Source of the DNA: Cycas panzhihuaensis
Taxonomy: Eukaryota; Plantae; Cycadophyta
NCBI GenBank assembly: GCA_023213395.1
Contig: CM041465.1
Coordinates: forward strand, 160,525,741-160,589,740
Direction: 5' to 3'
Length of the DNA: 64,000 nucleotides
Shown: positions 18,235 to 64,000 of the stretch, piece by piece
Layout: the number at the start of each line of letters is the position of its first letter
How positions within the stretch are numbered: the first letter of the stretch is position 1
Program-made: the position numbers and the translations under genes
The notes under the pieces: model-generated
The model's database searches: none
Told to the model about the DNA's origin: nothing
Seen by the model: the letters and a program-made list of their open reading frames with translations, nothing else

Positions 18235-18292
18235 TCTTCCCAGCTGCCTCTTTTGAATGAGTAGCATACTCGTTCATAAAAATTCCACTATT

Positions 18293-25717: not shown

Positions 25718-26009
25718 TGGGTTTAATACATGAGTGTGACCTTCTTTTACCTAAAGAATACAACAGTCCCACCCTACTGAGGTGGTGCTGTATACTTCTA
25801 ATTTTAACAAATTTTCTTCCCTTATATCAGTCTATAAACTTCCTCTTTGCTTGTTTATTAATTCTTGCTTTTCTTTGGGATTCAAGTCCTCCTGCAATGT
25901 TTCCTTATACCTTGGCAATTCTTCAGTATTTAATATTTTCTATGAATTTTTAGGATTTAACAGTAATTCTACATAGTTCTTCTATTGATTATTCCACCTG
26001 TCTATGTCT

Positions 26010-26666: not shown

Positions 26667-27105
26667 AAATCAACTACTTATTTTTGCTTTAAATTTTGAA
26701 TTATTCCCAAATTCTCCTGTACCTGATCATCTTCAAGATTTTGCAGGTTTATATCTTCTTAGTATTCTTTTTCCGCTTGGCTTGGCTCTTCTTTTTCGTC
26801 AGGAATTTTACCTTCTTTTTCCTCCTTTGGCTGACTCATGTCTTTTTAGGGCTCCTCATCCTTATTACATTCTATCAGTGCTACTAGGGTTTGGCTTTCT
26901 TCCTACCGCCCCTTCTAACTTTGCTTCTTTACTAGTTTTCTCTCTATTGGCTCCCTGGGTCTTCGCGCACCTTCCTGGCTCTTTTCTGCATCCTAGCGTC
27001 AGCTTCTTTCATCTTGCATCTTTGTCTTCTTCAACGAGATAACCCTAGGTGGTATGAGTGGCCTCTGGGTTTTAGCATTTCATCATGTTTCTATTAGGAA
27101 ATCTA

Positions 27106-27117
27106 GCAACGGAACCA
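27106..27117 (-). promoter_or_regulatory. Primer binding site, complementary to the tRNA-Glu 3' end
   Basis: TGGTTCCGTTGC, 3 nt inside the 5' LTR boundary; complement of plant cytosolic tRNA-Glu ...GCAACGGAA-CCA (from memory). Confidence 0.8.
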
Positions 27118-27120
27118 AGA

Positions 27121-27816
27121 TGTGTGCGCCTTAATCATACTATTAGCATACAGAAATTTAGAAGAGAAAGACACACACTTTGGGGGGTAAAATCATTCGG
27201 AATTACTTTTATTCAGAATAAGGCATTACATTTGGTCCTCTCACAACCAGACGCCTGTTGGAACAGTATAATTGGTTGCCCTAATATGTGGCACAGCACA
27301 AATAATATACATGCATGTAGACTAGATGATTCTGCACATCGTAGTTCCAACTCTTATATACAATATAGGTTAGTAACATAATTATTTTCGAACTAGTCCT
27401 ACTAATAACTTATTTCTTTCCAACTATCATTGGCCTACCCACTGCCTGGACCTACCCATATTTTGCCTGAATAGCACCTGTAGTAGCGATTCACTTTGGG
27501 TATGATTCACGCACACAGTGATTGCCACACTTGCGTAGTAGTTGCCGCACCTGTGTAGCAGCTCCATAGTAGTTCCGTAGTAGTTGCCGCACCTGAGAAG
27601 CAATTGCCGCACCTGTGTAGCAGCTCCATAGTAGTTCTGTGCTTGTAGACAAGATGCTTTATGTGATTGTAGTAGCACTGTAGTAGCCCTGTAGTAGTTG
27701 TAGCAGCACCGTAGTAGCCCTATAGTAGTTGTAGCATCACCGTAGTAGCCCTGTTGTAGTTGTAGTAGCACTGTAGTAGTTGTAGCAGCAAAATTAACTA
27801 CTTTTACCCACACATA
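27121..27816 (-). repeat. 5' LTR (696 bp) with an internal minisatellite (~27475-27790)
   Basis: Matches 17553-18234; flanked by PBS and TSD. Confidence 0.95.
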
Positions 27817-30800
27817 GGGGGTACTTATTATAAAGCCAAGGGATTATTAATTTATATAATTTATTATAAAGTTAAGGAATTCACCCCCTCTGTGAAATGA
27901 AATATTTGTTAAAAGTTGTCATTTATGAAATATTAAAAAGGTAGGAGTTTAATTGAAGAGATCATTATGATGGAATATTTCTTAAAGCTTTCACATTTAG
28001 AGAAACTATAAGCATTAATGAACTTCAAGAGGAGCTTTGACCTCAAAGAGAACTAACTTTTAAACCTTTTAATTATTTTTTTTGTATTACTATTACTATT
28101 ATTTAATATTATTTTTTTATTATTTATGTATCATCATGTGTGGATATATTATAGAATATCATTAGGTTCATAAAAATTTCCAAAATAAAAACCTATATAT
28201 TTTGTTCTCTACTAGTTGTATATGATCAACCTCTAGGTCACATATACATGCATTCTTTCTTATATAGTATTAAAGCTAATGGAGTACATAGTTGAGGTAA
28301 AGTAAATATTGACCTAAAATGAATTAAAGGGCTATTTACTAACTAAATAGGGATAAGGAAGAGGAGATGATGTAAATACATAACCCTAGAATAGATCCAG
28401 AGTGTGAGGAAAGATTCAAATAGGGAGGGGTATGGATATATACCCCTTATAGGACACTTATATATCTCTTGTACATAAGTGTGGAGATGATTATTGATAT
28501 GATTACTAGGTTAACTAAGTGCAATGCATAGATGCGTGTGATGGGTAAGAAAAAAAAGAGAATAAAAGAGAAACTAAAAGGAAAATAAGACTAAGTAATA
28601 ACTAAAATGTGTAATGCAATCAGGTAGATGAGTTAATGATGCATTAATTAATAAAGTGAACTAAAAACTAACTATAAAGCTTAAGATAATATCAATCAAA
28701 TAAATATCCAAAATCCTTAGGACCAAACAATAAAATAAAATCCTTAACAAAATAAGGGGGTCTATTAAGTATAGGTGCCCAAACTCCTATGTGACTATGT
28801 ACTTATCCTAATCAACTAAACCCACCTAAGTAGACTGACCTAATTTAACTTAGACTCTTACATGATCCTAAAACAATGAACTCGATCTATAAGAATAGGG
28901 GAAAGGATTACCTATAGAAAGAGGTTTAAAGGAATCAAGACCATATGATAGATCCACTTATGGATAAGTTAATGAAGACTTACTTAAAATGTAAAGTAAA
29001 GTTAGAGACAAAATTACAATATAAATGACTTTGTTAGAATTAGATGAAGAAGGATTATACATCATAAAATTTGAGGGAATAATATAAGTAAGATTAAGAC
29101 AACTATCTAATAGGGAAATAAAATAATATCTCATCAAATGGAAGGACATGGATAATAAAGATGTGACTCAGGAAGATGAAAATTAGCACTAATAGAATTT
29201 GTAGGAGTAAAGTATTTATTGAGAGGGGGACTTATTATAAAGCCAAGAGATTGTCAATTTATATATTTTATTATAAAGTTAATGGATGCACCCCCTCTGT
29301 GAAATGACATATTTGTTAAAAGTGGTTATTCATGAAAAATTAAAAGGGTAAGAGTTCAATTGAAGAGATCATTATGGTGGAATATTTCTTGAAGCTTTAA
29401 TATTTGGAGGCAACTATAAGCATCAATAAACTTTAAAAGGAGCCTTAGCCTCAAAGAGGACTAATTTTTAAACCTTTTAATTAATTTTTTATATTATTAT
29501 TACTATTATTTAATATGATTTTTTTATTATTTATGTATCATCATGTGTGGATATATTATAGAATATCATTAGATTCATAATAATTTCCATAATAAAAATC
29601 TACTGGTTGTATATGATCAATCTCTAGGTCACACATACATGTCTACTTTCTTATATAGTATCAAAGCTACTGGAGTACATAGTTGAGGTAAAGTAAATAT
29701 TGACCTAAAATGAATTAAAAGTATATTTAGTAACTAAACGAGGATAAGAAAGAGGAGATGACGTAAATACATAACCCTAGAATAGATCCAAAGGGTGAGG
29801 AGGGATTCGAGTAGGGAGGGGTATAGGCATACACCCCTTATAAGGTACTCATATATCTCATGTGCATAGGTGTGGGGATGATTATTGATATGCTTATTAG
29901 GTTGAGTAAGGGCAATGTATAAATTTATGTGATTTGAAAAAAAAAAAAGGAGAATAAAAGAGAAACTAAATGGAAAATTAAGACTAATAAACAACAAAAA
30001 TATGTAATGCAATTAGATAAATGAGGTAATGGTGTATCAACTAAGAAAGTGAATTGAAAATTGATTACAAAGTTTAAGATTATATTAATCAAACAAATAG
30101 CCAACATCCTTAAAGGGACCAAACAAGAAAATAAAATCCCTCACAATATGAGGGGGTCAATTGAGCATAGGTGTCCAAACTTCTATGTGACTATGTGCAT
30201 GTCCTAATCAACTAAACCCACCCAAGTAGACTGACCTAACTTAACTTAGACTCCCACATGACCCTAAGATGATGGATTTGATCTATGAGAATGAAGGAAA
30301 GGACTAATAACAAGAGGTTTAAAGGAATATGATAGAGCCACTTATGGATAAGTTAATTAAGACTTGTTAATACCAACAACCCAACTCATAAGATTATGAT
30401 ATAACTTAATAGTTCTTGTATTTAATTCTAATAGAACTCAAGCTCCTAAGTGATAAAAGAGGATATCGATCTTAATAAGATAAATGAAGTTTACTTGGAT
30501 ATCCATGCCCCATGAGTAATCATGTGGCAAGAATAGACACCCTTTATTAGCTTGTTCAAAACATAGATATGGAGGACTTAATGCGTCTAAAGGCACATGA
30601 CTACATCTCTTGTCTAATGATGAAATTCAAGTAGAGAAATTATAGTCCCCCTCTTAAGTATAAGAAAGGACCTTGAAACCTAAAAGAGACTAAAGAGAAA
30701 AGTAATAAATAATCTAATACATCTAGTATATAATTTTTAATTGGATGTAAATAACAAACAAACTACTTAGAAAATAAATATGTAGGCCACATGAATTTGA

Positions 30801-34084: not shown

Positions 34085-34440
34085 GTCAATTAATCTAAGT
34101 GTTATTTCCTCATAGGATATGATGGATTAATACTAACAAGAATTGTGATAACTATAACCTAGATTGGTTGCCAAGATTGGTAACTAGGGGCAATGGACTT
34201 GATAAACCTGATTGAGCTAGTAGATGACTAGTTAGGAGTCAAAAAATAATAAAATAGGGCCATGATAGACCTTCAATGCATAAATCAAAGCCTCAATAAT
34301 AGTAGTATACTTAGTAGTATTATTAGTCATTGCATGTAAGTAAACTCTAGAGTGAATCAAGACATACCCTAATTAGTCTCAGATGGTGCAAGTTGTAACA
34401 GAAAGACTAGGGTTCCCATAGCTACCTTTGTTGGTGTGAA
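34085..34440 (-). pseudogene. Archaeal-type RNase H (aRH) remnant
   Basis: Reads HTNKGSYGNPS..MTNNTTKYTTIIEAL..YHGPILL..DS*LV..VYQVHCP, collinear with ORF 62843-63334. Confidence 0.8.
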
Positions 34441-34831
34441 TGATTAATGCTATAAAGAGATGCAACAATAACTCAAATTCTATTTAATAAATAAGAGAAA
34501 TTAAGTGAGAATTAATAAATATAACTAGGTCTCAAGTTTGTATACTCACTGTCACTATAAAATAAGTTAAAAAATGGATCTTGTGAGTAGCTCATCATCA
34601 CTATCATCATAAGTTTTTAAAATTTATTTTGTCTTTCAAAGTGTTAAGTGAGTTTTGATCATGATTGAGGCCATGATGGACCTAAATAACTAGATCTAAA
34701 GGTCCTACATGACCCACATATCTGGAGTTGAACTACAAATCATAGGTGGGGATGAAACTGACGTATGACCAAGAATATGGAAAGAGGTCTATGTACAAAT
34801 ATACAACACTTCTTTTTCTATATTTTTTATT

Positions 34832-34889: not shown

Positions 34890-36250
34890 TCTAAGATCAT
34901 ACTCCTATAGAAGCACTTCCTATATTCTTATTCATCTAGTTAAGTCTAACTTAGTCATTAGGAAATGTAAAGGGTTAGATTGGATAATGACATTAGTTAT
35001 TTTGCCTATTAGGTAATGCCTTAATTTTTTAGTGGTAAACGTAAGGGACAAACACTCTTTCTTAGTAGGAGTGTAGTTGAGGTTAGTCACAACTAGGGTT
35101 TGGATAATGAAGTATATAATCTATTCAATTTTAAAATCATCTTCTTAGGCTAAGATGGACCTAATTAGTTCACTTGTAAATGGCATATACAAGTTGAATG
35201 GATAGTTAAACCTAAAGGAAGCCAAGATAGGGGTTGAGACAAGACCATGTTTTAATTCTTAAAAGGCAATTTGAGTTGCTAAGGTCCAAACTAATAAACA
35301 CTCCTTCTTAAGGAGATTAGTTAAAGGTTTAGTATTCATGGTGAAGTTTTCCAAGAAGAACCATAAGAAACCTTATTATTACAAGAATGACTTAATTTGC
35401 TTTTGAGTTCTAGGTAGGGTTATTTAGGATTACTTTGACTTTCTCAAAATCAACTTGGACCCCTTTTTGAAAAATAAGAAAACCTAATAATTTACTAGCT
35501 ACAACCATGAATATGCATTTTTATGGGTTCAAGCTAACATGGAACTTTAACATATTATGAAAAATTTTCCAAGATCAGCTGGATGGTCATTCCTAGTTTG
35601 TAAGAAGCCTAGAAAGTTGTCCATGAACACCTGAAGAATCTTGTTGACGAGGTTATAGAAAATGAAATGCATAGCCTACTAGTAGGTTACACCAGTATTT
35701 TTGAGGCCAAAAGGCATGGTGATATATGCAAAGGTTCCCCAGGGAGTAGTAAATACCATCTTATGGTAGTCTTCAAGTGAAATTTAGATTTGATTATACC
35801 CCAAGAACACATCCATTAAGGGCATAACTTTGAAGTCTACTACCTATCAATTATTTGATCTATGAAAAAGAGAGAAAAATGTATTTTTAAGGCAGACATT
35901 ATTTATATCCCTAAAGTTAATACAGATGCAAATAACCTCATTCTTTTTTTTTTTTTTTATAGGCACAATATTAGATACCTATCATGGGTATTTAATTGAA
36001 GTGATTAAGGCATCATTATGAAAGTTTTCCATTTCTATTTTAATGTCTACCAAATGTTTAGGATGGATGGGGAGTTATTTTTACCTGACAGGCTTAGCTC
36101 CAAGAGTCCTCATGAGGTTATGGGTAATGATCTCAAGGTTTATACCCTTTATGTCAGTGTAATCCTATATGAAAATGCATCAAAATTCTTGAAACAACAT
36201 TGTGTATTAAACCACTTTATCTAGGGAGAATTCAACTCCAATTTTGATAA
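34890..36250 (-). pseudogene. pol: Reverse transcriptase and RNase H-like domain
   Basis: ICINFRDINNVC, MDVFLGYNQI, FTTPWGTFAYITMPFGLKN, NYTPTKKECL, KLRHYL. Confidence 0.87.
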
Positions 36251-37705
36251 TCTTACCTAAGGCCAAGGTAATATTAATGGCTTCTCTTGAAAGAAGGATG
36301 TTTCCTTCCTCAAATTGATGGGGTGCTTGATCAATAGGTGGATTTAGGGGAGGATGCATCATTATAGGCTCATAAAGAGGTGACCTAATGGCAAGGCATT
36401 TTTGAAACCCTAACTTATGGTGGTTTGGAGGAAGGTTGTGTGATTCACTTGTGAGATGTTCAAGTAGTGGTTCATCATTCTTAAAGTAATTATTGTTGTC
36501 TGTAATCTTGAATGGTGTGATAGGCTCAAGCTTTTCAATGTGTGAGTTTATACATTGATCAAATTCCTAGTCAATGTAATAAGGAAATTCCTTAGATGAG
36601 TTTAAGTATTAATGTTTAAGAGGTATAAGATTAAACCTTCCCATAAGGAGGTCAAGAGAAAAGGTGGATGGGTCTTGTTCTAGCTTTGTGTTAAAGACAA
36701 GGGGGACAATAGACTCATGGGAGAATAAAGAAGGAGAGAGTTATAAATAATAGACTTATCATAGGAAAAGGTTGAATTAGACTCACTATTTGAATAATAC
36801 ATGGGAAGGTTTTGGTCTAGATTAAGTTGGATGATGACTAGATCTACAAAGTCCCACACATGGTGAATCATATTAAGGATTCATGGTGGGGAAGGGGAGT
36901 GGACTTCAATGATCAATGGAATAGTGGTCTCAATTGGGAGGGCCTTAAGAATTAAAGTATATTACCCAAATGAGTAACTAACCACTAGAACCCTTCATGG
37001 TAAGTTACTTGGATGATAGATTTAAGGGTAGGTAGGGATAGGTCTTATGGCTTAGGGATTTCTTGGGGTGAATGGGATGATAGTTATGGATAAATTAATT
37101 GGAATGGTAAGCAAGCCAAGCATGCTAAAGAGGAGACATCCTATGGGGCCAAAGGGGTAGGGGCTTCACTTAAGTATTCTCAATAGAGTCCTACTAGGGT
37201 TCAAATAGGTGAAGAGACCTTTGGGAAGGGCCAAAAGGAGGGGGAATACCTATATGAGATGATTCCCTTGAGGTTTAAGAAATAATGGCTATTTGATATA
37301 TAGGATACTCAAGGCCTTCATCATCATATTCTAGGTTACTAAGGAGAGTCAAGTATCCATAGCTATTAATCCTAATTAGGGTAAAATGAACCATATTTGG
37401 TTTAAGAAAAGGAGGATCATCATCATATTGAGAGCCTAGACCTTGAAAGAAGTCATTAAGGGAAGGCTTTGGCTCAAAGATCTCATCATCTTCCAAATTA
37501 AAGATGGCTTGAATAATAGGTTGGGATGATCAAGAAGGGCACATTTCACATGTGACTACATACACTCTTCCATTAGTAATGAATTTCAATTGACCCCACT
37601 AGGATGAGTATACTACCCTAATCTAGTCCAACCATGGTTATCCCAAAGGGAGGTTGTAATCAATATCAATGTCAAGGATAATGATGTAAATGAAGATGGT
37701 TTTTT

Positions 37706-38079
37706 TGTTACATAACTTATTTGGATAAGTTATGTAAACCACTATGGAACTTTATGCATGTGTCATCTTGCAGGCCAATAGTATGCATGGGCATTGCCGT
37801 CCAATAGAATGTAAGACTGCTTAGGCCACCAATAGGATTACATATATAAGACCCTATTTTATCTATATAAGGGTCATAAATTATAAATGATGGTTATCTT
37901 AATAGAATACTTTTATAAAGATTATGCTACAGTACTTTCTATCTTTTGGTGATCATTTACTGCTCTGGTGTTCCTGTGAAACTCTTGGTTAGCTTATTTG
38001 CTCTGTTGGATATGAAGACATTGCTGCGATTGTTAAATTCTCTACTATCTCAAGAGTATTGGCGAGAAGAAACGTCCCA
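37706..38079 (+). repeat. 5' LTR (374 bp)
   Basis: TG..CA; matches 43725-44097. Confidence 0.95.
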
Positions 38080-38081
38080 AG

Positions 38082-38093
38082 TGGTATCAAAGC
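38082..38093 (+). promoter_or_regulatory. PBS for initiator tRNA-Met
   Basis: TGGTATCAAAGC versus canonical TGGTATCAGAGC. Confidence 0.9.
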
Positions 38094-39191
38094 TGCGTCG
38101 CGATCGTGGGAGGCTGCCCAAAAGTCCATAATTTTTTTTCTTTCTCTATCAGATCGAGTACTCTCTCTACCCTAGTAGATATCGAGGAAAGACCTTCGCT
38201 TAGTACTCTATCCATGGAGATTGAGGAATGGTATCAGGACAGTCCAAGAGTTGAGAGAAAGGGGAAATTCATTTCCCAGGTAACTCTAGTACTTTATCCC
38301 TTATCTTTCATCTGGTTTTAAATTTCATTCCTATTTTTTGATTCTGCTATTGAATTATATCTTAAGGGTAGATAACATCGCTAGGCGGATATGTTTTCTC
38401 CCTCCCACCTCCTTTCCTGGGTATCGCAGGGATGTGTTATTCTGGCTAAGTGCATAGTGGCCCTCCTACCCTTTGTGTGAAGGATTGGCATATCACTCCT
38501 GAGCCAAGCCCTAGATAGAACCTAGCTATGGTAGTGCGCCTCCACGTACCTTCGGGTATATAGGAAGGACCCCACCTTCAGATCCCAATCTTTTTCCAGC
38601 ATAGGCAACTATCAACCGCTGAAGTCTTATACTATAGTGGTTAGCAGTTAGTGTCACAAAGCTACTTGCCCTGAACTTCTACAGTTTATTAGCAGGCCTA
38701 TAAGACCAAGCACACCTTGTCTAGTGGTTGGTAGGATACTTTGGTTAAGACTGTAAGCCACCTCACAATTTGGAAAAAAAAGAAAGAAAGAAAAAAAAAA
38801 AAATTCAGTGAGGAAATTTATCCTTACATGTATATACCTCATTTTGATTAGCACATCATACTAGTCAATTTTCACTAGGTTGGTATATATTATAAATTTT
38901 TATAATTTTTAGTACCTAGTCATCAGTGGGCCCCACACCCCCCCCCCCCCTTTTTACACTTCACATGCCCCATTTGAACAAGCTTTTCACACTATTGAAA
39001 GAACTTTATATCTTGTTTATGTAACTTTCTTTGGGGTCAACAGGCTATAGAAACCCCATAATCTCCTTATTCACCCCCCTCAGTTTCCCTTAACAACCCC
39101 CTTTTTCTTACGTCTCGTTCTTTCTTGATCTTTCCCACTTCAATCATTCCCCTTCTTTCTACTTATTCCCGCCTCTTTACGCCCTTTCTCC

Positions 39192-42100
39192 ATGGCTCCT
39201 CAAAGCGATAGTGACAAAATCTCAACACTTGAGACTGAAGTCCATAGAATTAATGATACAATAAAGGATCTCGGCCACATATGTGATGAGGTTAAAAATG
39301 AAGTAGGTACCTTACATGCAAACTTTAGCTCAAAATTGTAAAACCTAGCATCTCATATTGATGTCTAAGATATAATTAAGAGGTTGAATAACTTCTCTCC
39401 TCCACCACTAGTTGGCCCTGCACAACAACAAATCATGCCTCCACCTCCACATCAGCAACAACCATTCCATCATAAGATCAACATACCCACATTTGATCCA
39501 GATCTCAACAAGGATAGTGCACAAAGTTGGATTAGCAAACTAGAGTCTTACTTTGCACTTAACCCAATGCCAGTGAATGACCAACTTACATTTGCTTCCA
39601 TTCACTTAGATGGGAAGGTATATTATTGGTTTCGATGGTGGAAATAGGAGTACCCCTCCAACTAATCTTGGGTGCACTTCTCTACCTATTTTTTCGAGCA
39701 GTATGAAGACACTTGGAGTCAATCTTTTTTTACACAGCTAACATGCTTGAAACAAGTATCCTCTATCGAAGTTTACATGGACGAGTTCCAATCTTTACAT
39801 AATTGGGTTGATCAGCAACTTGATAAATAGACAGAGATAGATACGTACGTATCCAGACTTAAAGAACGTATCCAAATGCACTTAAAGATAATCTCCCTAT
39901 CCACTCTAAAGGATGCAATTAATATGGCTAAAGTAGTAGAAGTAGAATTTGCTACAGAAAGACCTCCTCCATTCAGATGAGACTCCACGTGGTTTTCACG
40001 ATCCTGACAAGCTGATATAGCCTAGTCCCAGAGACCACGATCACGCCTACGACTAGAGGACACCCCAGCTACATCTCTCAAGCAACGCACTAAGGAATCA
40101 TTATTAAAGTCCATCCACATCACTCCTACAGAGGCACAACGTTGTCAGGAAGTTGGTCTATATATGTAATATTCTGAAAAATAGACCACTAGTCACAATA
40201 GAGTCTACAAAGCTAGGAAGATGGTCTTTACAATTGACCCAGACTTACCCTCAGATGATGACCCTAATGCTAAGCATGAATATGATGATGAACCCCAAGC
40301 CCACCTTATTGATGAGTTACCCCCAAACCCTGAGCCTGAAGTTTCCTTATCTACAGTTACCTCAATTGCATGTCCTGAACCACTTCCAGTCAAAGGAATA
40401 CTTAGGAAAACCTCGATTACCATTTTGATCGATGGTGGCACGTCGCTAAATTTCATCAATATCTCCATTACCCGCCAATTAAATCTTTACATAAAACCTA
40501 AAACTTGCTTCACTTGCTCCTTACCTAGTCATCACACACTCTATTATGTGGGAACAATAAAAAACCTCACAGCCCACATTGGCTCATATACCCTTGTCTC
40601 TGATTTTTATGCCCTTTCCATAGGTGGGTCAGATGCAATTCTTGGCGTATAATGGCTCTAGACTCTAAGGACTTATAGCACCAATAACTCACCCACGACC
40701 CCCTTCATTATGTTCAAAGATCACATGGGCCACTCTCATAAACTTTATGGGATGCAAGCCCCCCTAAATAAAGTAATCTCACCCTCAAGAATGCACCGCC
40801 AACTCAACGATAACATCAGATACATCATTCATCTTAACCATATCCAGGCCCTCTCAGGTATCCACCCTGATATCCAACAAGTATTGGATCGATACCAATC
40901 TATATTTGCTCTGTTACCTACTAGCCCCCTACCTAATCGAGGCTTTTACCATATTATTAAGTTACAAAGTTCGCATGACCCGATAAGCCTTCGACCATAT
41001 AGAAATTCCTATTTCCAAAAAAATGAAATTAAAAAAATCATGTAGGAATTATTGGACATGGGTATCATCCAACCTAGTAAAAGCCTATATGTAGCACCTG
41101 TCATCTTAGTTCGTAAGAAGGATGGATCTTTCTGACTTTGTGTTGACTATCGTGTGCTCAATAAAATCACCATAAAAAATAAGTTTCCCACGCCACAAAT
41201 CGATGACATATTAGATGAAATCTATGGCGCTACAATTTTCACCAAGCTTGATTTATAGTCAGGATACTACCAAATCCCCATCTTGCCGGAGGATCAACTT
41301 AAAATAGCTTTCTAAACCCACCATAGCCACTTTGAGTTCCAAGTCATGCCCTTTGGCCTATATAATGCTTCGGCCACCTTTCAGGCTCTCATGAACAAGA
41401 TCTTCTCCCCATACTTACAAAAATTTATCATCGTCTTCTTCGATGATATTCTTATCTATAGCTCAAACATGCTGGCCCATATCCCACATTTAGAAATAGT
41501 CCTTCAAATCCTAGCTGAGAATAAATTGTATGCTAAGCTCTCCAAATATGAATTTGGGCAATCTGAATTACAATACCTTGGGCATATTATATCCTTTGCA
41601 GGGGTTTCGGTGGATCTTGATAAAATCTCTGTCATCACTAATTGGCCAACCCCAAAAACCCTAACCCAATTGCGGTCTTTCCTAGGACTTACTAGATTCT
41701 ATCGACGGTTCATTCGAAATTATACCACACTCACTACTCCCTTAACCCACTTACTTCGGAAGGATTCCTTCCAGTGGTCCCCCTCAGCTAATGAGGCCTT
41801 CCTCCATTTAAAGGAGGTCATGACAACCACCCCAGTCTTAGCCTCCCTTGACTTTTCTCAGCCTTTCCAATTAGAATACGATGCCTCTGGGTTTGGATTA
41901 GGTGTGGTCTTAATGTAAGACTTCTACCCCATTGTCTTCGAAAGTTGAAAACTCAAAGATCATGAGTGTATTCTTTTTACCTATAAAAAAGAAATGCGGG
42001 CCATCCTCCATGCTGTTGACAAGTGGCGACAGTATCTACTTGGGTCTAAATTCACTATCCTCACTGATCATCATAGCCTTCGCCATTTACTAGATCAATC

Positions 42101-43697
42101 AGTCCTCTCAGAAGAGTTGGCGAAATGGGTCAACCACCTCCAAGTTTTTGATTTTACAATAACATATAAAAGGGTAAAGATAACATTGTGGCAGATGCTC
42201 TGTCAAGGTTGCCTTCACCTACACATGGCGATAACACTGGTCATACTGAGGACCCCACCATTTATGCCATTTCCTCCCCACAACTAACATGGCTATAGGA
42301 TTTAGCCATGGCTAACCAAAACCAACATGATTTTGTGCACTGGGCCAATAAGGTCCACACTCATAAGGATTGGTCCATCTATAATAATCTTCTCTTATAC
42401 CAAAATCGCATATTCGTACATCCCCTCTCAACTTTTATCCCACAAATTTTATCAGAATATCATTCTTCCCCTCTTGGCGGCTACTTTGGTTTTGATAAAA
42501 CTTACCGTAGGATTCGTTCTGACTTCTTTCGGCCAGAAATGAAATCCACCATCCTTACCTTTGTCTCATAATGTGATACATCCCAATGTAACAAAGCTGA
42601 TACAAAATCCCAACCGAGCCTCCTTCAACCATTGCATATCCCACAAGGTAAATGGCAAGATATTGCCATGGACTTTATAACGGGCCTACCACCATCTGTT
42701 GGATTTGACTCCATTTTAGTAGTCATAGATCGGTTGACAAAATATGCCAACTTCTTACCCGTCCATACAACCTATAAAGCCCCACGCATCGCTGACATCT
42801 ACATCCAGACAATATTTCATTTGCATGGTTTTTCATCCACCATTGTATGCGATCGCGATCCTAAATTCACTAGCTCCTTTTGGCAAGAGCTATTCTGCGC
42901 ATCAGGTATATCATTCAATATGAGTTCTACATACCATCCATAGACCGATGGCCAATTTGAGGTCCTTAACAAAACCCTGGAGACCTACTTACATTGCTTT
43001 GAATATGACTACTAGTATAAATAGACATCATGGCTAACTCTAGCTGAGTCTTGGTACAACTCCTCACACCATTCAGCGATTGGAATGTCCCCATTTTTGG
43101 CTCTCTATGGGTATCCCCATCCATCCCACCACACCTTAACTACCAACCTCTGTATGACAGCAATGCAAAAAAAATTACAGTATATGGACCAAATTCTCCA
43201 CACCCTTAAACAAAACCTATTCATGGCCCAAAATTGAATGAAACAATTAGCAGACCACCACTGCTCTAATCGCTGCTTCAATATTAGGGATTTAGTATTT
43301 CTTCGTCTCCAGCCTTATAAGCAACAATCCCTTCACCATCATAAGAACCACAAACTTAGCCCTCGATATTATGTCCCCTATAAGTCCTTAAATGTATTGG
43401 TGAAGTTGCATATGCTCTCGACCTTCCCCTCACCACAAACATCCATAATGTTTTTCATGTCTCCTATCTTCGGACGTGTCTAAGAAAACCCCATACTCCA
43501 CAGATAACCCTTCTAATTTTGGATGAAGAGCAAACCTTGTCTGTACCTCTAAAATATATCCTGGTTACTAGACAATGACATCTCTGGAATCAGTCTATTT
43601 CAGAATATTTGATACAGTGGACAGGCTACACCTCTGATGAAGTAACTTGGGAGTCTGATGAGTTTGTCAAAAAGCACCCATATCTCACTTGCCTTAA
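39192..43697 (+). pseudogene. gag-pol: gag-pol (gag, PR, RT, RH, IN, chromodomain) with stops and frameshifts
   Basis: WISKLESYF; LIDGGTSLNFI; MPFGL, FFDDIL; EYDASGFG, TDHHSL; WQDIAMDFI, CDRDPKF; EYLIQWTG..EVTWES. Confidence 0.95.
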
Positions 43698-43724
43698 GGA
43701 CTCGGCATCTTAAGGGAGGGGACT

Positions 43725-44097
43725 TATTACATAACTTATCTGACTAAGTTATATAAACCACTATGAAACTTTATGCATGTGCCATCTTGCAGGCCAATAG
43801 TATGCATGGGCACTGCCGTCCAATAGAATGTAAGGCCACTTAGGCCACCAATAGGATTACATGTATAAGACCCTATTTTGTCTATATAAGGGTCATAAAT
43901 TATAAATGATGGTTATCTTAATAGAACATTTTTATAAAGATTGTGTCGCGGTACTTTCTATATTTTGGTGATCATTTAGCGCTTTAGTGTTCCTGTGAAA
44001 CTCTTGGTTAGCTTGTTTACTCTATTGGATAAGAAGACATTGCTATGATTGTCAAATTCTCTGTTATCTTAAGAGTATTGCGAGAAGAAACGTCCAA
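43725..44097 (+). repeat. 3' LTR
   Basis: Follows the PPT; termini mutated (TA..AA); matches the 5' LTR. Confidence 0.93.
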
Positions 44098-52400: not shown

Positions 52401-55400
52401 TGTTTTCTAGCTATTAAGAATGGGTTTTTGGCAAGTTGACTCAGGTAAGTACGGGTATGCTTCTAGCCTTTACCTTTATTACTTCTATAGAAAGGTAAAT
52501 CGAAGCATCCCTTTATTACATGGCTGACTAATACATTCAAGTGATTATCTTACACCCATTGCTTAGTCATATTGCTGGATACTCTTTAAGCATATGATGA
52601 TCAGTGGGACATGTATCCCCATGGCACTCTACAACCCTCCTATATACCTCTATATTGTCTTAGACATCACTCAGCTCGTGTGATCCATCACACACCCCCT
52701 TGCCACATTGTAGCCCTTAGCACCCTACTAAGTGTGATTGGTACATCTTTATTCCAGTTATCAGTTTCTTGAGAATATTACTGCCCCGGTAGCCCATCTC
52801 GTTTAGGTCATCCTCTTCACATGACTGTCCCTAACCATATGGACTGAGGGCCGGCCCTTCCTAGGCTTGGGGTACCCTCCTTTAAGGCTCCTAAACATCT
52901 ATTTTTGTCATGTTTTTGTCTCTATTACCGCACTATGGAAAATGTAGTGGTATCACAGTAAACTTCTCAGTATCGTGAAGTTTATTGTAGGGTGACTGTT
53001 ACTTAACATTTTTTAAAATCTGCCCTAGCAAATTTCACTTTTCTCATGAAATTACCATGCAGCTTTAACACCCCTTAGGTCTTACCCTAACCTTAATCAT
53101 CTATTCAGCCTAGGGTTAGGTATAAATCCCAAAAGAACTTCATTTTTTGTCTCTTCTTCCACCTACTCTCATCTCTTCTCCTTCTTCCACAGGCAGTTTT
53201 CTACAAGAATACCCTGTAGCACCTGAATTCCCTATGCTCCAGCTTGAGATCTACCCTCCTCATCTTGGATCTATAGTAGTAGGCTTACCAACAAGCTCTT
53301 TAAAGCAAGGATTCACTCCAAGTTTTGCCTCCATACCCTTTCAACAAGTTTCAACAAGTTTGTTTCTAAGTTGCAGCATCCTCCTAAGGACCCCCCTGGA
53401 AGCACCTTGGATTTGTTATTTCCTGCTATTTTAGGGGCAGACCTACCTCCAACTCAGTCTAACAGGTATTATCTTATTTTTACTCCATTTCTTTCCTTTG
53501 AACTATCTTATAAGAGGTTAGATCATTGAGAATATCTTTCCTTTCTTTATTCTTTAGTGCATACAAGAAGTAGTCCATCCGTTTCTTTTCTTTCTACCCT
53601 CTTCATCTTCTTGCCCTCTCCTAGTTTTTTTTAAGAAGGCTATGGGAGAGGATCCTAAAGAGTGAGAGAAAGGATCCAAGGTGGGTTTTGTACCTAACTA
53701 GGCCTGCTCCTCAAGGGTAACCCCCTTCTCCTCTTTCCTCTCTTCCATTCATGCCTTTCTTAAGCTACTAAGAAGTCTCCAAGAATTGGCCAGTGCTAGA
53801 TATCAGCGTATGAAACCCCTTGTTGTGCTATTTCCATGACTGTGTACCTCTTTTGGGAAGTTTTTCCAGCCCCAAATACTGTCTCTCATCCACCTTGGGT
53901 CTTGGCTTGGCTAATATTGCAATTTGCTGCATATAGCAACACATGCAACATAGGTAATATTTGTAAGCCTCGTGCTATTTGTTTCTCCTATTATTTACTA
54001 CCATTAGGCTATCCCAACCTATTGTTTCCTATGCTTAAGGGTAGTGTGGAGGTGCACTTATTGGAGGGTTAGCCATTTCAAGGCTAACCTTTCCCATACC
54101 TTATCTTGTGTTATTGGCTTTTGGGAGATGTAGAGTTATTCTTGGGCTGGAAGATCACTTAACTTGAAGTACTTTAACTTGCATTATTTTTAGTATTTTA
54201 CAATTACATATATACATATATTTACTTGGCATTTTAGTAGCTCCTTGGAAAAGAGCATAAAACCTTTATGATTGTAGGTTTATCGCACCATTCATGAAGA
54301 AGGACAAACCACAACAATTCGGGTACATTTCTTGGCTTTCCTTTTCCTTGGTTACTTCAACTTTTGTATAGTTCCATTTCTTTTGTGTTTTTCTTTCTTT
54401 CTTTCTTTTATTTTGGGGGAGGTAAGGAAGCCTCTACATCGCTCATGTGTTAGGAGAGGGAAAAGAAGAAGTGGATGTGGTGCAAGATGAAAACTTTATT
54501 TCAACTGCATCATCTTTCTAGGTACACTGCCTTTCTTTTGTAGGTCTTTTCTTACTTTTTTTTAGTTTATATATTCACATGAAAAGAACATAAAGGAATA
54601 AGGTAAAAGAGAACCAACTTACATCATTCATTTACACACTAGCTTGCATTTTAGGAAAGAGCATTTGACAGGAGATATCCCTTTTCCTCTTTTTATTTGG
54701 TCACATACAACCCCCTAGGGTTTACATCATTGATGTGCATTTTGCGTGATTGATTGGTATATCTCTTTTCTTCCCCTTTCCCTTGCTTAAAGTGAAATAA
54801 GAGCGAGGATTTATGTTTGAGAGAAAATGAGAGAAAAAAAGTATATTTATTATCTTTTATACATATATGCTTTATTAACCTCTTATTTACATACACAAAT
54901 AATTAGTCACTATTTCATTATTACACATAGGAGGTAGACTCCCTCACACATATAGTAGTGGGAACTTCTTCTGCCACCATTCTTTATTCCTCCCACACTC
55001 CCTTTAGGTGGGTTAGTTCAAGGAGGACTCATCCCCTAAGACCTCCTCCTTTTACCCCATTATACCTATACCAACTTAATAACCTTAGCACTTCCTCTTT
55101 TAGGTTGGTTTTGTGCATAAGGTGGTTATCTAATACCACCCTTATAAATAGATACCTCTTGCAACATACTTACACATATCCCATCTACATCCCTTCGTCT
55201 TCCACGAGGATCTGCTTTCTTGTTGGGTCTTGCCTTCTTCTTCTGGCCATCCAAGGGCAGGAATACCCCTATTTTGAGGTTACTCAGGCAGTCGAGGATA
55301 TCCATTGCTTACACTACTCTCCATAATCAAAGACTAAGTTACCTAGAGAAAGTTGTGCATCATTCGTGGGTCTCGAACCTGCGTTCTGATGCACGAATGC

Positions 55401-56349
55401 CCTGTGTGGGTGCTTCCTTTCACTTGTTGGATTAACCCCTTCACTCAGGAGCCTTCTGTTGATAGTCCTAATCTTAACCAGATGTAGTTACTAGGCAAAT
55501 AACCCTCTTGCTGATGTTATGGAAGCCTTGAGATAATGTTTCGAAGTTGCCCATTTGTAACCACATCCCAAGTGGTTTAAGAATGCCTTACGAAGCATTG
55601 TGCTTCCTTCTTCTATATCTCTTTCACCTTGCTCATCTCAACCAACTCCCTTACCCACGATGAGCCTGCCTCTTATCTCTTCTTCTTCTCCCCATGGTGT
55701 ATGTTCCTTAGGGACCACTGAGGGCATCTCATCTTCTCAACTCAGGTTGAGCATGCCCCCATCTAGTCAGATGACTAGTCCTTCTGCCACCATTATTTAT
55801 CTGCCACCTACTAGACCCAGGGGACCCATGTGTTCCCCTACTTCTAGTCATGTGGGGTTCTTCCTCGTATACTGCCAATACCAACCTAGGGACCTTTCTC
55901 TCTACGTACCTCCCATTTACACTACTCAACCATGGGGGCATGGTAAAGGGAACTCCCTACCTGCTTATGGGTTGGACCCTTTGCATCCTTATGGGGTCGC
56001 GCCACCTAGGGGCAGCCCATATAGGCAGAATCTGGTCCCTTACCCCTCCTTCCCGCTATCTTGTATGGCACCTCACATCATGCCTTTATAAGAAGGGCTA
56101 ACTCCTTCCCAAGGCATTTTCCCTCAAGCTCCTTTTTAACAAGGAGCGTTCCCCCTATGAGGGATGGATCCATCATAGCTATCCACTCCCATGCAGGTTT
56201 CTTCGAATGTGGAATTTGTGCCTCTTCACCAAGGAGTAGGAGGATAACATTCCCTTTTGAACCAAACCCTTTAAGTAGGATTTGGGCAAACCTACTCACC
56301 AGCATTTCTAGCTTCCATTGACCCAATGGTCTAGTCAAGGGCACATCCC

Positions 56350-57260
56350 TTTATGGACTATCGATTAAACCACTTATCTATTGAGGCGTTAAGAACTAAC
56401 TTACCGCCTCACCCTCATGAAGTCCCCAAACTCAATGGGACTTTCTCGTAGGAACCAACAGAGCATATCCATAGTTTCTCTATTGTATACATCGACTACT
56501 GGGCCTACGACCACATCTTCATGAAACTATTTCTGTGATCTCTTCAAGGTGATACCCTCAAATAGTTTTATCGCCTGCCCGCACATTCTATTTTTTTATT
56601 CCAATAGCTCGTGGATGAGTTCATTAACTATTTTAACGTGGCTCATCGATTTGGGAGTGGGATGAAATCCTTTTTGTCACTTAAACAAGGTCACAATGAA
56701 ATGAATCGTGACTTTGTGAGTTGTTTCCATGACCACCTTCATTCCACTAAGGTGGCTTTGCCTGAGGAGTTGAAGAGGGACCTTTTTGTCAATACATTTT
56801 GTCTAGAAGTCTATGTAGAAGTCCTCAAGATAGAGGCAACTACGTGTGACTCCACCATAGCGAAGTGCTTGGCACTCAAGGCCATTGAGATCTAGATTAG
56901 ACTCAAGAAGCCTCTAAAGTCCTCATAGTGACGTGAGGTACCTGCACCACCATGAGAAACCAAAACTCAACAACCCACTAGGTCTTCTTCCCATTCTACC
57001 AAGAAGACCCTAGATCCCCTCACTTCAGCCATATGTTCATTCGAATATACTATGAAGGAGCTCAAGCTCTAAGCTCCGTCATCCCACACATCTAATAAGC
57101 TAGTCCACTAGGCTTTCCAAGATGCTCCTTCTAAGGGTGACAACACCCAATCCTCTCAAGCAAGGAAACCCGATTCCTCCCTTAAGAAGAAGTGGTGCTC
57201 CATCTATGGGAAGTGCTTCTACGATGATTCATGGTATCAGGCCCAATATCCTAAGGCTAC
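56350..57260 (+). pseudogene. gag: gag (Retrotrans_gag-like capsid region)
   Basis: EPTEHIHSF..FMKLFL*SLQGDTLK*FYRLPAHSI..LVDEFINYF..LSLKQGHNE..DFVSCF. Confidence 0.85.
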
Positions 57261-57899
57261 CCTGCAACATGACTCTTCCCCTAATAGGCATCTAGGCCTA
57301 ACCTAGACCAACCCATTCATAGAGATCCCTTTCCCAAACATGGGGAACGTGATCATAACCCCTAGTAAAAGAACATCCAGAACTGAGGAAGGTCCTTAAA
57401 CCCTCGCCCTTCACAAGCTAAAGGGAAGGGTATGAGGAATTCATCCTCTTCCTCAGGTTCCTCTAACCAACATACCCCTTCACCTTTACGATCCTGGAAT
57501 AAAGAAACGAAGGTCATTCAGTTACTTGAGACTACCCCATTGTATGCCTTAACCTAGTCTCAAGCAGTTAAAGAGGTGAATGATGCCTCTTCATCCATAC
57601 CTCATCTTGATCCTCTTCTGGAGGTCCCTCCTCTAGAAGTCCCTATGCTTCCCAAGACCATTCCCGTGCGCCCTGGCCATTATGATTTTTGAACCATGCT
57701 TCCCCAACCTACTATGAAGGGGAAGCCCTTCTCTATTGTTGATGAGCTTCATATCGTCACCGCGGGAATGTCCTTGATGGATCTCTTGAGAAGCTGTCTT
57801 GAGTAACGTGCTCTTCTTCTTGAAGCTCTTGGCCAATAAGATGCTTCTATCCATATGATATGTGCCACCTCCCATGGATGACCTATCATCTCATTTAAT

Positions 57900-58300
57900 C
57901 ACTGAGATCTCCCATCTCTAAGTGAACAGGAGAGGTTTTTGCATTACCTATTTGTCATTTCCATTGACACTCCTGATTTTGTCATAAAGAGGACCATTAT
58001 AGATAATGACTCCTTGGTTAATGTTATGCCTATGCACATGCTCAAGGAGATGGGTATAGTAGCTCTTGACTTTATCCCTTAGAAATGCCAAGGGTATGAC
58101 CGGACTGAGAAGTCCCCCTTAGAGATAGTCTCCCTTTCCCTCACCTTAGGAGGGAAGACCGTTGATGTTGAAGTTGTTGTACTCAATATCGATGTGGAGT
58201 ACAACCTCTTATTGGGCTGACCATGGCTTGACCAAATGGAAGCAATCTGCTCCTTATATTGGGGGAAACTTAAATTTGTCCATGAAGGACAAGTTAAGGT
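57900..58300 (+). pseudogene. Aspartic protease
   Basis: KRTIIDNDSLVNVMP and YNLLLG*PWLDQMEAICS; collinear with the split protease at 37560-37705 and 44098-44300. Confidence 0.85.
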
Positions 58301-59719
58301 TATCACCCGTGAGCCTATGCCATCTCACACTTCTCATCTAACCTTCCAGGCTGTCTTCAATGATGAAGATAGCAATCCTGAGGAGGTTATCCCTTCCGTG
58401 TGGCCTCTATTTCAAGAGATTGACCTTCATTAGTTAGAACCTATGCCTTGTCATAAGCCAAACCTAGTCAGGTTCACCCTTATTGGTATAGGTAATTATG
58501 GTTATTTAGCCATCATGGGTGATTCTAAGTTGAATAACGAGGGTTATGAGCCCCCTCCTCAGTGTGTCACCCTAGTTTCATGAGCACCTATAGAGATACC
58601 TCAATTAGATATTCCTACTCCTCTTCATTCTACATTGGCTCTTGAGCCACTGGTTCCAAACTAACCACTTCTTTTATCTTCTCACCCTCCTTGAGCGGTT
58701 TCACGTAGGTATCTCTGTCGATGAGCCACTCGTAAAGGCACTTCTTCTTCACGCTCTGGATCCTCATCCAGGACCAGAGCCACTCCTACTGAGATGCAAC
58801 CCTACCACGTGATCCATTACATGCTAAGTCTGTCACACTCATCTGGTTCTGACCATAACTAGTTTGCTTATAGGCCTAGCCACATATGGCCTACCCTTCA
58901 TCACTTATTTCCAATTCTATATGTGACTACCCCTACCCCTGTTTGGGCTAAGAACACTTCCCTCTCTCTTGGTGCTCTGAAATGAGCCTAAACTACCACC
59001 CTAGGTGTGTCCCTATTCCCCCTAGTCATAGGTGGAATGGCAGCTTAGGGTGGCCTTCTTGCTTCTTTTGGGTTTATCACGTAGAACCCCTTATCCCCAT
59101 TTCTTTGGGGGGCTCATCTTCCTAATTGGGTGTGTTGTCTCTGTTGCCCCTGAGCTTGGAAACATTCCCTAATTAGGATGATATGCTAGAGTATTGTCAC
59201 TCCTTTCCTGCTAGCACTTCCTTTGCGTATCCCATTATGCTTCTATATGGACATGTATACTGCCCTACCTCCTAGCCTCACATATGTCCATCGCTGATTC
59301 TCATGGTGATCGTGTGTGCACCTACTAGGAATATGGCCTTGCATGAAAGGAAGTGTGTGTAACTCAAATAATCCTCTAACTCAAACCATATAATAAACAA
59401 CTTAAGAACACCATAATCTATAGCTCCTCGTGCATCTGTGTACCCTCATATATATACACACATGCATACACATAAAAGCAAACATAACATCATCCATCAT
59501 CATGTGTCATCATACACATCAACATATATCAAATAAGGTGCCAATGGCCCCGTCTATATATATAAAATAATCACGTGTCATATCATATAAATGGTATGGT
59601 ACATAATCTGCGGGAAGTCAGAATCCTTGTAAGGAGGAGTACAATCATGTGGCAATATATGGTGACTCCCTAGAGGTCTGGTGCTTTCTCATGTCAAATA
59701 AAAAACTACTGTATCATAC

Positions 59720-60342
59720 TCTCTAGTGCTGCTTTGCTCCTAAGATATCATCTCCTGGTCTATGTGATGTCTTTCTTGGGGACCACATGCCTCCCAGACT
59801 CCTCTTGCACCTCTCAGAGCTCCTTACCTTCCTCCCCTCATCTTAAGGCCTCCTCGGGGTCATCGTTGTTGTGTGGGTATATGTCTTGCTCCTCGTTGAC
59901 CTCGACACCATCTGGTCCACCAGCTGATCGTATCATATTTGGATACGATCCCTCTCGCCCTTCACTCCTCAAAGTTGCTCCTTTAGTACTACTACCCTGA
60001 TGTATCTCTCTACATCACCACCTACTCCTCCCTAAGCCTTTAGAGCCTGGACTTGACCTCCTAGAGCATCTCTCTCCACTCTAGTCATATCTAGCTCTCC
60101 CTATAGTTGTCCTACTTGAGCCTCGTGCTCTTGGGGACTTTGCCGCCCACATGTCTCTAGCCCTGACTAATGGGGCGAATGCTACTGTATAGGCCCCTGC
60201 TAACCATGGATCCTCTCCTACCTAGATAGGAGGCTATCCCTCCACATAGGCCTGGGGGAACATCTCCCAGACTACTGCTTCAACCAACCTCTCGATGTCC
60301 ACCGCTCCTGCAGAATCCAACATGCCATGTGTTAGTATGTAG

Positions 60343-60378
<36 letters not shown>

Positions 60379-62182
60379 ATATCCACATCTAATAAATCAA
60401 ATAAAGCACTGTAACTAGATATCTGGTGATCGAAAGATGGTAAGTAAATGTAGTATCTCACCTGCTGGAACTGCTAGCTCCATGATTCAGACAGTCACCT
60501 CCTCCTTAGGTCCTCCCCCTACTGTTGGTACCTCCTCCTCCTCTGGTACCACCTCTTTGATTGCCTAGCCTGTTGGGGCACCTCTACCCTCCTTTGTTGG
60601 TGCTACTACTACTCAGACTCTCCCCACTATCCTCAACTTCCAAACTAGTATTCGAGAAGCTCCACCTCTCCATGTAATCCTTGAAGGAGCCGCCTCTTCT
60701 CCTGTGACTCCTGATGGACCCACCTCTCCACTTGTTGCTCCTGATGGGTCAACCTCATCACCCCCATCATCTCTATCATCATCATCTCCCTCACTAGGAG
60801 TACCTCCTGATCCTCCTACCTCATCATTACTATCCTACCTCACCCCTCTATACAAATATGATGTATAGTCTACCATGGTAAGGAGGTCTAGTGATATAGC
60901 CTCCATTGATTGCCTAACATGTACTTAGTCCTCAGTTCTCCTGAACCAAGTCTGCCACCTATAGACTAGGGAAGCCCATGCTGAAATCAGGTGTGGCCCT
61001 CCTAGTAGTGCCACAGCTTCAAAATGATCGAAGAACCAACACTGCAACAACGTGCTGTAGGATATTCGTCGTCTCCTAGCTACCCTAATGGCATCTAAAA
61101 GGGTGACCAAGTTCGCAACTATCAACGTGGCCTAGTCCAATCTCTCCCCAGCCTTGCATCTCCTTACTGTGTCCATCCATACATCGGATATGTCCCTATA
61201 ATTCTGTTCCCAGGATATCTAGAACAGAATGCATAGTGTAATTAATTTCCTCACACGAGGAATCATGGACATAATCATACTCTGTATAGGTATGCCTCTC
61301 CTCTCCCACCAGTCTTGACCTATGAAATAGATCACTACCTCCTTGTATGCAGTGCCATTGTTAGGCAATATGCTTAGCGATGCTAGTACTCCTGCCACTG
61401 GTACTCCTAAGATCCTCCTAATATCTCCTGGTGTGACTGTGACATCTCCCACTTGTGGGAAATGGAATACGTACCTCTGTCGATCCCAATGTAAGATAAT
61501 ATCCACTAGGAGGCGTTGGTTGGATGTATATTGTAGTGTCTAGATGGCCTTCAATAGGCCACACCTCCCCAACACTCACCAGTCTCCTTGAGACATCATC
61601 TTAATAATGATGAGCATAGCTACTCCTATATTCTCACAGTTGTCCACTGCGATAATTGCCTGTAAAACACCCAAGAAACTAATCAAAATCCATCTAAACC
61701 CACTTACATGCCTTCAGGACTACCTCTCATTCCTCTTTGATCAAGGTTTGGCTCTCCTTTAGGCCATCTTTTATGTTTTTCATCTTATATGCCATTACAC
61801 CATGCTAAAATCTGTAGTACTGCAGAGTTTAGCATAGGGCCCACTAAGATTTTAGCATGATCTCAGTGGTGTGATGGCAAAGATCTCAACACTGTGATCT
61901 TCGCCGTGGTATCGATGTCACCCCACAAAATGGGGAGTTTTATACCCAAAAATAAAAAACTTTTGCCTGGGTGGGCCACGCTCAAGTCCATTAAGACCAG
62001 GGTTGCCTAATACCCTAGTCCCCCCTCTCGCTAGGTCTAATTCAGACTTTAGGAGCTTGCCATTCACACATAAGGGGCCCAAAACTACATCAAAAAATGC
62101 TAAAAAGCTATAAAAATTAAATGATGAAAATGGGTCAGGGAACGAGTGATCCACTCACCAGATCTGGCCTCGCTACTGCCAT
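59720..62182 (-). pseudogene. Spliced plant mobile domain (PMD) gene antisense to the element: exons 62159-62182, 60462-61659 and ~59720-60307; 3' end approximate
   Basis: PMD motifs ILHWDRQRYVFHFPQVGDVTVTPGDIRRILGVPVAG and D*ATLIVANL..TLLQCWFFDHF. GT-AG introns at 62158-61660 and 60461-60308; removing them joins the exons in frame. Confidence 0.8.
60343..60370. repeat. (AT)n microsatellite inside predicted intron 2
   Basis: About 14 AT units seen directly. Confidence 0.95.
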
Positions 62183-62340
62183 CTCGTCCCTCTAGTCTTA
62201 CTGACTGTTTCTGCATCCTAATCTGATGGCTTGATCTCTTCCTGTATGCCTTTGAAGTCATGCAACACTTCGTTGTATAAGGAGAAGGGCTCTGAATCGT
62301 TCGTGAGCCCGTGAAAATGAATTCTATTTTTGTTAAGTTT

Positions 62341-62351
62341 CCTTATATAGG
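62341..62351 (-). promoter_or_regulatory. Candidate TATA box for the PMD gene
   Basis: CCTATATAAGG on the minus strand, ~160 bp upstream of the predicted ATG at 62182. Confidence 0.5.
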
Positions 62352-63334: not shown

Positions 63335-63834
63335 GAGACATTTTCAGTCACCCATGCACCCAACTCTCAGGTCATCTTACACTTCATATCATGATCTATT
63401 TGCACCTCTAAAAGTTGGCCGCTAATGAGGTTAAACTATGGTGACCAGTAGGTTTATTTTCTTTGCTCTACTCTTAGCATTTTAGCATATAACTCTTGTT
63501 ATTCTTGGCTTGAATATGTACATAACACTTTGTTCATAACATCTATCTAATCTTATGTGTGGTCCTTACCACCCTTCCATTCTACTCTTACGATGTGGGC
63601 ATCTCCCTCATCCACTATCATCGCTTGCTATCTATACAGTGATACATAGGCAGCCCTTATATTGTCTCGCCCTTGCCTCTACACCCACACACTCCACCAC
63701 GACACTCGCTATTGCCCTTGGCTCGCACCATTTTTATGATTATTTATATATATATGTTCTACTAACATTGTGTTACCAGTATTTGCCATCGCATTATGCC
63801 TCCAAGCTACGAGGCTCTGCTACCAAGGGGGCAG

Positions 63835-64000
63835 TGTTTCTCGGCTACTAGGAATGGGTTCTTGGAAATTCGACTCAGGTAAGTATATGTATGTTTCTAG
63901 CCTTTACCTTTATTACTTCTATAGAAAGGTAAACTGAAGCATCCCTTCATTGCATGGATGACTGATACATTTGAATGATCATCTTGCATACGTTTCTTAG
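63835..64000 (+). repeat. Start of the 3' LTR (runs off the window)
   Basis: TG start after the PPT; matches 52401 onward. Confidence 0.9.

Follow-up and report, generated by a model that had tools for sequence, protein, structure and literature searches.

A decayed antisense gene with a plant mobile domain in a Tat-like LTR retrotransposon of Cycas panzhihuaensis

A plant mobile domain pseudogene on the minus strand

We analyzed a stretch of 64,000 nucleotides from Cycas panzhihuaensis (NCBI GenBank assembly GCA_023213395.1, contig CM041465.1, positions 160,525,741 to 160,589,740 of the forward strand; hereafter the window), in which a long terminal repeat (LTR) retrotransposon carries, on the opposite strand, a gene with a plant mobile domain (PMD). 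An earlier note on this DNA had described that gene as spliced, separately promoted and antisense to its host element, and all the landmarks and coordinates it listed are present on the minus strand (Table 1), down to the end of candidate exon 3 at the TAG at 59725-59723. The evidence on the introns considered here consists of intrinsic sequence features of a single copy in the window. The segment 59723-62351 (minus strand) is a pseudogene, and a PMD protein cannot be made from this copy. We further regard it as probably a copy, no longer functional, of the accessory gene, or extra open reading frame (extra ORF), that Tat-lineage Ty3/gypsy elements carry in antisense orientation.

The identity of the domain was addressed by Pfam and protein homology searches, which took the stop-free pieces of the gene one by one. 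For the window piece 61222-61539, PMD (Pfam PF10536; gathering threshold of 34.9 bits, profile length 347) was the only Pfam match (E 4e-4, 20 bits, profile positions 11-59). PMD was also the only Pfam domain detected in two intact relatives, namely P0001 (E 2.9e-5, 23.8 bits, positions 1-67) and P0002 (E 1e-4, 22.1 bits, positions 38-179), and the three matches are collinear on the PMD profile, together extending over positions 1-179 of 347. When 1.8 billion representative proteins were searched exhaustively with HMMER, only six relatives were returned, all of them short fragments from Logan assemblies; in the same search, P0007, a canonical PMD fragment (Pfam PMD 3.9e-41), matched the window piece with an E of 2.5e-5. 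Two more fragments were retrieved in a protein homology search with P0001 as query. The close relatives of the window PMD, with 55-65% amino acid identity, are fragments in the assemblies of other projects. Moreover, PMD clusters made up 22 of the 30 neighbors of the window piece in the ESM Atlas, and 27 of the 30 neighbors of P0002, with scores of 0.93-0.94. The claim that the long exon encodes a PMD is supported by the collinear Pfam matches, sub-threshold as they are, by the match to P0007 and by the ESM Atlas neighbors, and we accept exon 2 as a divergent PMD that covers, as judged by eye, roughly two thirds of the Pfam model, counted from its start, and is followed by the linker. No second PMD copy was found in the window by local tblastn, including in a related element (element B, described below), and, with single proteins as queries, metagenome and viral collections yielded no relative. 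A degenerate DNA pattern for GDIRRILGVP matched one metagenome contig, which is unrelated.

The extent of decay is best seen in exon 2, whose frame holds nine stops in 399 codons, as compared to 36 and 28 stops in the other two frames, and we therefore take it as the remnant of a real but decayed ORF. All nine stops are a single transition away from CAG, CAA, CGA or TGG, and the observed/expected ratio of CpG is 0.33, both of which fit methylation-driven decay. In addition, P0002 is uninterrupted across two of the stops in the window, and has Q and W at those positions. Overall, the damage amounts to 11 in-frame stops (nine in exon 2 and two in exon 3) and at least one frameshift, near 60140. 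The joined frame had been proposed to be interrupted only by point stops up to approximately 60150; the stops are there, and the frameshift near 60140 has to be added to them. As for the age of the insertion, the LTRs of the host element differ by approximately 15% (a comparison of only about 150 nt), which points to an old event. On commonly used plant rates, this would very roughly amount to several million years, which would be sufficient for the stops to have accumulated through neutral decay.

Table 1. Coordinates of the antisense gene and of the main features of its host element in the window.
Feature	Position	Strand	Evidence
TATA-like motif CCTATATAAGG	62351-62341	-	sequence reading
Candidate exon 1, 8 codons (MAVARPDL), ATG at 62182	62182-62159	-	sequence reading
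Candidate intron 1, GTGAGT...TTTTACAG, 499 nt, GC 0.42; alternatively untranscribed or 5' untranslated region	62158-61660	-	
Exon 2, 1198 nt, divergent PMD followed by acidic Gly/Glu-rich linker, 9 in-frame stops	61659-60462	-	
PMD part of exon 2	about 61560-60840	-	
Candidate intron 2, GTGAGA...TACTAAC...TGCAG, 154 nt, GC 0.28, with (TA)n tract	60461-60308	-	
Candidate exon 3; the noted frame, with 2 stops, runs for about 55 codons, then frameshift and helix-compatible text	60307-59723	-	
Start of 5' LTR, begins TGTT	52401-52566	+	direct repeat with 63835-64000, 83-85% identical
Gag-like region with stops	56338-57084	+	tblastx to element B
Protease-like region and following segment, with stops	57637-58622	+	tblastx to element B; retropepsin-like motifs by eye
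Remnant of an archaeal-type RNase H (aRNH), free of stops for 170 codons	62822-63331	+	Pfam
Polypurine tract CCAAGGGGGCAG, adjoins 3' LTR	63823-63834	+	
Start of 3' LTR, TGTT..., truncated where the window ends	63835-64000	+	direct repeat with 52401-52566

The host retrotransposon

The LTR starts, the polypurine tract, the archaeal-type RNase H (aRNH) and the homology of the gag and protease regions support the earlier proposal of an LTR retrotransposon that harbors the PMD gene in antisense orientation. This host element, which extends on the plus strand from 52401 to beyond 64000, shows the order gag, protease, antisense PMD gene, aRNH, polypurine tract and LTR, and is an old, non-autonomous, Tat-like element. 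The Tat-like assignment is based on the presence of the aRNH and on the homology of gag and protease to a second Tat-like element of the window, element B. In local tblastx comparisons, homology to element B extends over 55228-58622: positions 56446-56907 matched positions 45846-45385 of the window with 51% amino acid identity over 154 residues (174 bits), and the protease region matched element B at 44618-44098 and 37658-37236. The aRNH was recognized in Pfam as RVT_3 (8.7e-14) and RNase_H (7.7e-6), and it is 45% identical in amino acid sequence to the aRNH of element B at 34453-34166 (tblastx); the protein homology search of the aRNH piece found nothing.

The remaining enzymatic functions of a Ty3/gypsy element were looked for in the host element, and neither reverse transcriptase (RT), nor the Ty3/gypsy-type RNase H (gRNH), nor integrase was found; in particular, there was no RT or integrase signal in 58430-59720. 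Pfam searches gave no significant match for the gag and protease regions, and nothing in the 5' region of the element or in the interval that separates the protease from the PMD gene.

As PMDs occur in Mutator-like (MULE) transposons and in host genes too (PMC9289625), the PMD segment could have reached a single copy of the element as an unrelated insertion, either of a Mutator-like element or of a piece of some host gene with a PMD. We hold this to be very improbable. Around the segment, neither terminal inverted repeats nor a target-site duplication were found, which makes a separate insertion unlikely, and there is no transposase; moreover, the composition and the decay of the segment resemble those of the rest of the element. 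In addition, relatives with 55-65% amino acid identity occur in the assemblies of other projects, and sequencing runs from several organisms contain parts of the DNA of the stretch.

Several further features of the host element and its surroundings were recorded. The aRNH frame is free of stops over its whole length, while elsewhere in the element stops occur approximately every 40 codons; no in-frame ATG precedes the domain, and its first catalytic Asp reads, by eye, as Asn. The aRNH stands head-to-head with the PMD gene, approximately 500 nt ahead of the polypurine tract. Close to the other end, a motif resembling a primer-binding site (PBS), TGGTATCACAGT, is found with two mismatches at 52948-52959 (plus strand), approximately 546 nt past the start of the 5' LTR. 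If this motif is real, then the LTR is short, and approximately 3.6 kb of unexplained sequence precede gag; within the stretch before gag lies a Pro/Ser-rich open frame of 176 codons (55561-56088, plus strand).

Element B is the more decayed of the two Tat-like elements and occupies approximately 47100-32500 on the minus strand of the window, with RT remnants, a gRNH at 34935-35120 (PF17917, 4e-10) and an aRNH at 34166-34453. Another LTR element is nested within it (37705-44095), with LTRs at 37705-38077 and 43724-44095 that are 90% identical, and with a PBS-like motif, TGGTATCAAAGC, at 38082, which adjoins the left LTR and is one mismatch away from the initiator-Met tRNA type. Further away, the region 15849-30365 contains dense direct repeats of 77-90% identity (e.g., 27816-28981 with 29224-30365, and 17041-17552 with 28718-29229), and tandem repeats of approximately 69-70 nt each form an array at 26006-26666. 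These probably represent LTRs and arrays of further nested elements.

The candidate introns

The earlier note proposed that the family has a self-promoted antisense gene with two spliceosomal introns, of 499 and 154 nt, whose orientation, opposite to that of the genomic RNA, lets them outlast retrotransposition. If so, the present copy would be just a decayed example. On balance, we judge this two-intron model as a whole unlikely. A spliced and separately promoted antisense accessory gene that resembles it is HBZ of human T-cell leukemia virus type 1; however, HBZ belongs to an animal retrovirus, has its promoter in the 3' LTR and encodes an unrelated protein. The logic by which antisense introns would survive reverse transcription is sound, yet it is no evidence that these two intervals are introns. 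Excision of both intervals does join the frames of the exons, as had been claimed, and the GT and AG that bound them resemble the consensus: when splice sites over 2.9 kb were ranked with a rough, plant-like weight matrix, the proposed donors came 4th and 5th among 161 GT, and the acceptors 6th and 9th among 309 AG. Against these high ranks, donors that score equally or better are found approximately every 500-700 nt on both strands, and splice-like motifs were no rarer than in chance controls. The donor 9-mer of intron 1, CTG/GTGAGT, even recurs at 61579 (minus strand) inside the PMD coding frame of exon 2, where it makes the first in-frame stop; at this position relatives have Glu or Gly, and three of them read through. 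An identical 9-mer in such a place indicates that strong splice-like motifs arise here by chance or through decay.

The two intervals differ in what the sequence offers. Intron 1, with a GC content of 0.42 against 0.47 in the exon, is not AT-rich. Its proposed first exon is very short and lies behind two upstream ATGs (62262 and 62216). Homology to the relatives begins only a few codons from the intron-1 acceptor, a point in favor of the two-intron model; however, their ORFs themselves start 4-13 codons past it, so that intron 1 is unnecessary for coding, and the conserved MAM carried by P0001, P0009 and P0010, which lies inside exon 2, could be the true start. At least two further TATA-like motifs, near 61945 and 61790, lie between CCTATATAAGG and exon 2. 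At best, the 499-nt interval could be an intron of the 5' untranslated region, and we find even this doubtful.

The shorter interval is the stronger of the two candidates. The GC content of intron 2 drops sharply relative to its flanking exons (0.47 and 0.52), its borders read CAG/GTGAGA and TGCAG/G, and a branch-point-like TACTAAC stands approximately 27 nt ahead of the acceptor. Nonetheless, ten GT..AG pairs join the frames around this interval, and the noted pair is only the second best, as an alternative of 73 nt scores higher; in addition, the frame of exon 3 is open throughout the interval and has an in-frame ATG at 60327. Taking these features of the DNA together, the AT-rich interval of 154 nt that separates the linker from the tail appears to be a reasonable candidate for an intron, with a chance that we put at even or slightly better.

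An account without introns has to be considered alongside. In it, the extra ORF would be continuous, or would consist of two adjacent ORFs; the 154-nt interval would be an insertion or expansion seeded by (TA)n, its length being indivisible by 3 merely by accident, and the 499-nt interval a promoter or 5' leader. The (TA)n tract, expected to mutate fast, does lie within the 154-nt interval, GCAGG is repeated at both of its borders, as after an insertion, and the other frameshift of this copy (near 60140) came about without any intron to explain it. A reading as two ORFs is also possible, as the first frame stops 14 codons into the interval, and the second one has the ATG at 60327. Moreover, surveys report such extra ORFs as continuous and of at least 250 codons (PMC6317226). 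What this account leaves unexplained is that consensus-like GT and AG, together with the branch-point-like motif, bound the interval exactly, and that the composition drops sharply at both borders; besides, a bicistronic mRNA would be unusual in a eukaryote. We consider the absence of introns possible, although less likely than not. With regard to transcripts, no RNA run was found among the sequencing runs that contain parts of the stretch (the best DNA share being 0.18), a point against the two-intron model.

Finally, a broader picture can be drawn, in which a Tat-like lineage of this genome, members without RT included, carries just ahead of its 3' LTR a conserved cassette of two accessory genes, namely a spliced, self-promoted antisense PMD gene and, in head-to-head orientation, an RNase H detached from pol. 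The introns of such a cassette would be retained by virtue of their orientation, opposite to that of the genomic RNA. We offer this picture tentatively, and on present grounds lean against it.

Relation to known accessory genes

Antisense PMD genes in Tat-lineage elements have already been published and are hence not new (PMC4408406, PMC6317226). Ustyantsev et al. (2015) described antisense extra ORFs in the 3' part of Tat elements, with a PMD in lineage III and a PMD with a coiled coil in lineage V, and credited the first report of such extra ORFs to Steinbauerova et al. (2011) (PMC4408406). In a survey that defined an extra ORF as uninterrupted and of at least 250 codons, 57% of the extra ORFs of Ogre elements carried a PMD (PMC6317226), and PMD is the most frequent non-canonical domain of plant Gypsy elements (PMC9289625). 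There is also a review of antisense ORFs situated from pol to the 3' LTR, including gene23 of Grande, which has its own promoter; that review calls for a search for antisense and spliced transcripts, and the word intron is absent from it (PMC7264820). Likewise, the paper on the antisense ORF of Retand makes no mention of introns (PMC11963269).

Among these systems, the gene described here is closest to the Tat eORF-3'R (PMC4408406). Both are antisense to gag, with an N-terminal PMD, a linker and a helix-compatible tail, in a Tat-like host that bears an aRNH. They differ in that the host element here is without RT, gRNH and integrase, and in that the ORF is broken; in addition, candidate introns are not mentioned in the accessible literature. 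Ogre elements also combine a PMD with the Tat clade, have a protease fused to gag, and are a precedent for spliced LTR retrotransposons in plants. However, the PMD of Ogre is located in ORF1, which is in sense orientation at the 5' side, upstream of gag (PMC6317226), and its intron is on the sense strand, between gag-protease and RT, and is removed from only some of the transcripts. The aORF-3R genes of Grande (gene23), RIRE2 and Retand (PMC7264820, PMC11963269) are likewise accessory genes that run opposite to gag-pol within a long internal region, and non-autonomous members retain that region; the internal promoter of gene23 has been experimentally shown. Their products differ, as they have a TRP28 domain or none known, and no introns have been described in them. 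Lastly, the host proteins MAIN and MAIL1 (PMC7156037) belong to the same Pfam domain family. They are encoded by host genes of the PMD-C clade and, together with PP7L, take part in regulating genes and silencing transposons, and their function is not transferable.

An accessory gene of the Tat type is our preferred interpretation of the minus-strand segment. Its product would comprise an N-terminal PMD, the acidic Gly/Glu-rich linker and a helix-compatible tail, and the gene would sit between the protease and the aRNH of a non-autonomous, Tat-like host. In intact relatives, its transcription would presumably start at an antisense promoter within the element, by analogy with Grande gene23, and the product may be a PMD protein that works for the element in the nucleus or in association with DNA. 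Modulation of host silencing by the gene, as proposed in the earlier note, is pure inference.

Certain observations weigh against this interpretation. Each of the PMD fragments scores below the gathering score of the Pfam model (20-24 against 34.9 bits). The gag and protease regions were identified solely through their homology to element B and by eye, and, as the host element is without RT, it cannot be placed on a lineage tree. The position of the gene agrees only in part with the eORF-3'R: it is antisense and falls within the 3' half of the internal sequence, yet upstream of the aRNH, between protease and aRNH and not between pol and the 3' LTR, pol being otherwise missing. This gene order fits no published Tat architecture, and none of the three published positions of the aRNH (PMC6317226, PMC4408406). 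The tail, too, is less clear than had been supposed. Exon 3 had been said to read like a coiled coil, but in the noted frame it does not; the coiled-coil-like text appears in another frame, after the frameshift near 60140 and down to 59725. In this shifted frame, 60133-59881 is free of Pro and 40% of its residues are charged or Gln, and a crude test of the heptad a and d positions performed no better than shuffles (P = 0.42). The protein homology search of the exon-3 piece found nothing, and the coiled coil of the tail is a resemblance only.

Altogether, the gene belongs to a class of accessory genes that has been published, as an unremarkable, dead representative whose non-autonomous host is unusual, and what would go beyond the accessible literature is limited to the introns and to the position beside a detached aRNH in an element without RT. 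Antisense accessory genes are widespread in plant retrotransposons. The fact that the PMD gene and the RNase H were kept in this single dead copy, while RT and integrase were lost, is a hint that this region may matter to the element. If the cassette of spliced PMD gene and detached RNase H is true, ORF-based surveys would have missed or split the gene. More generally, if the introns are real, such genes are under-counted and mis-delimited, since surveys count only ORFs that run without interruption for at least 250 codons (PMC6317226), and an intron-bearing gene would argue for its acquisition by the element as genomic DNA and not as a retrocopy.

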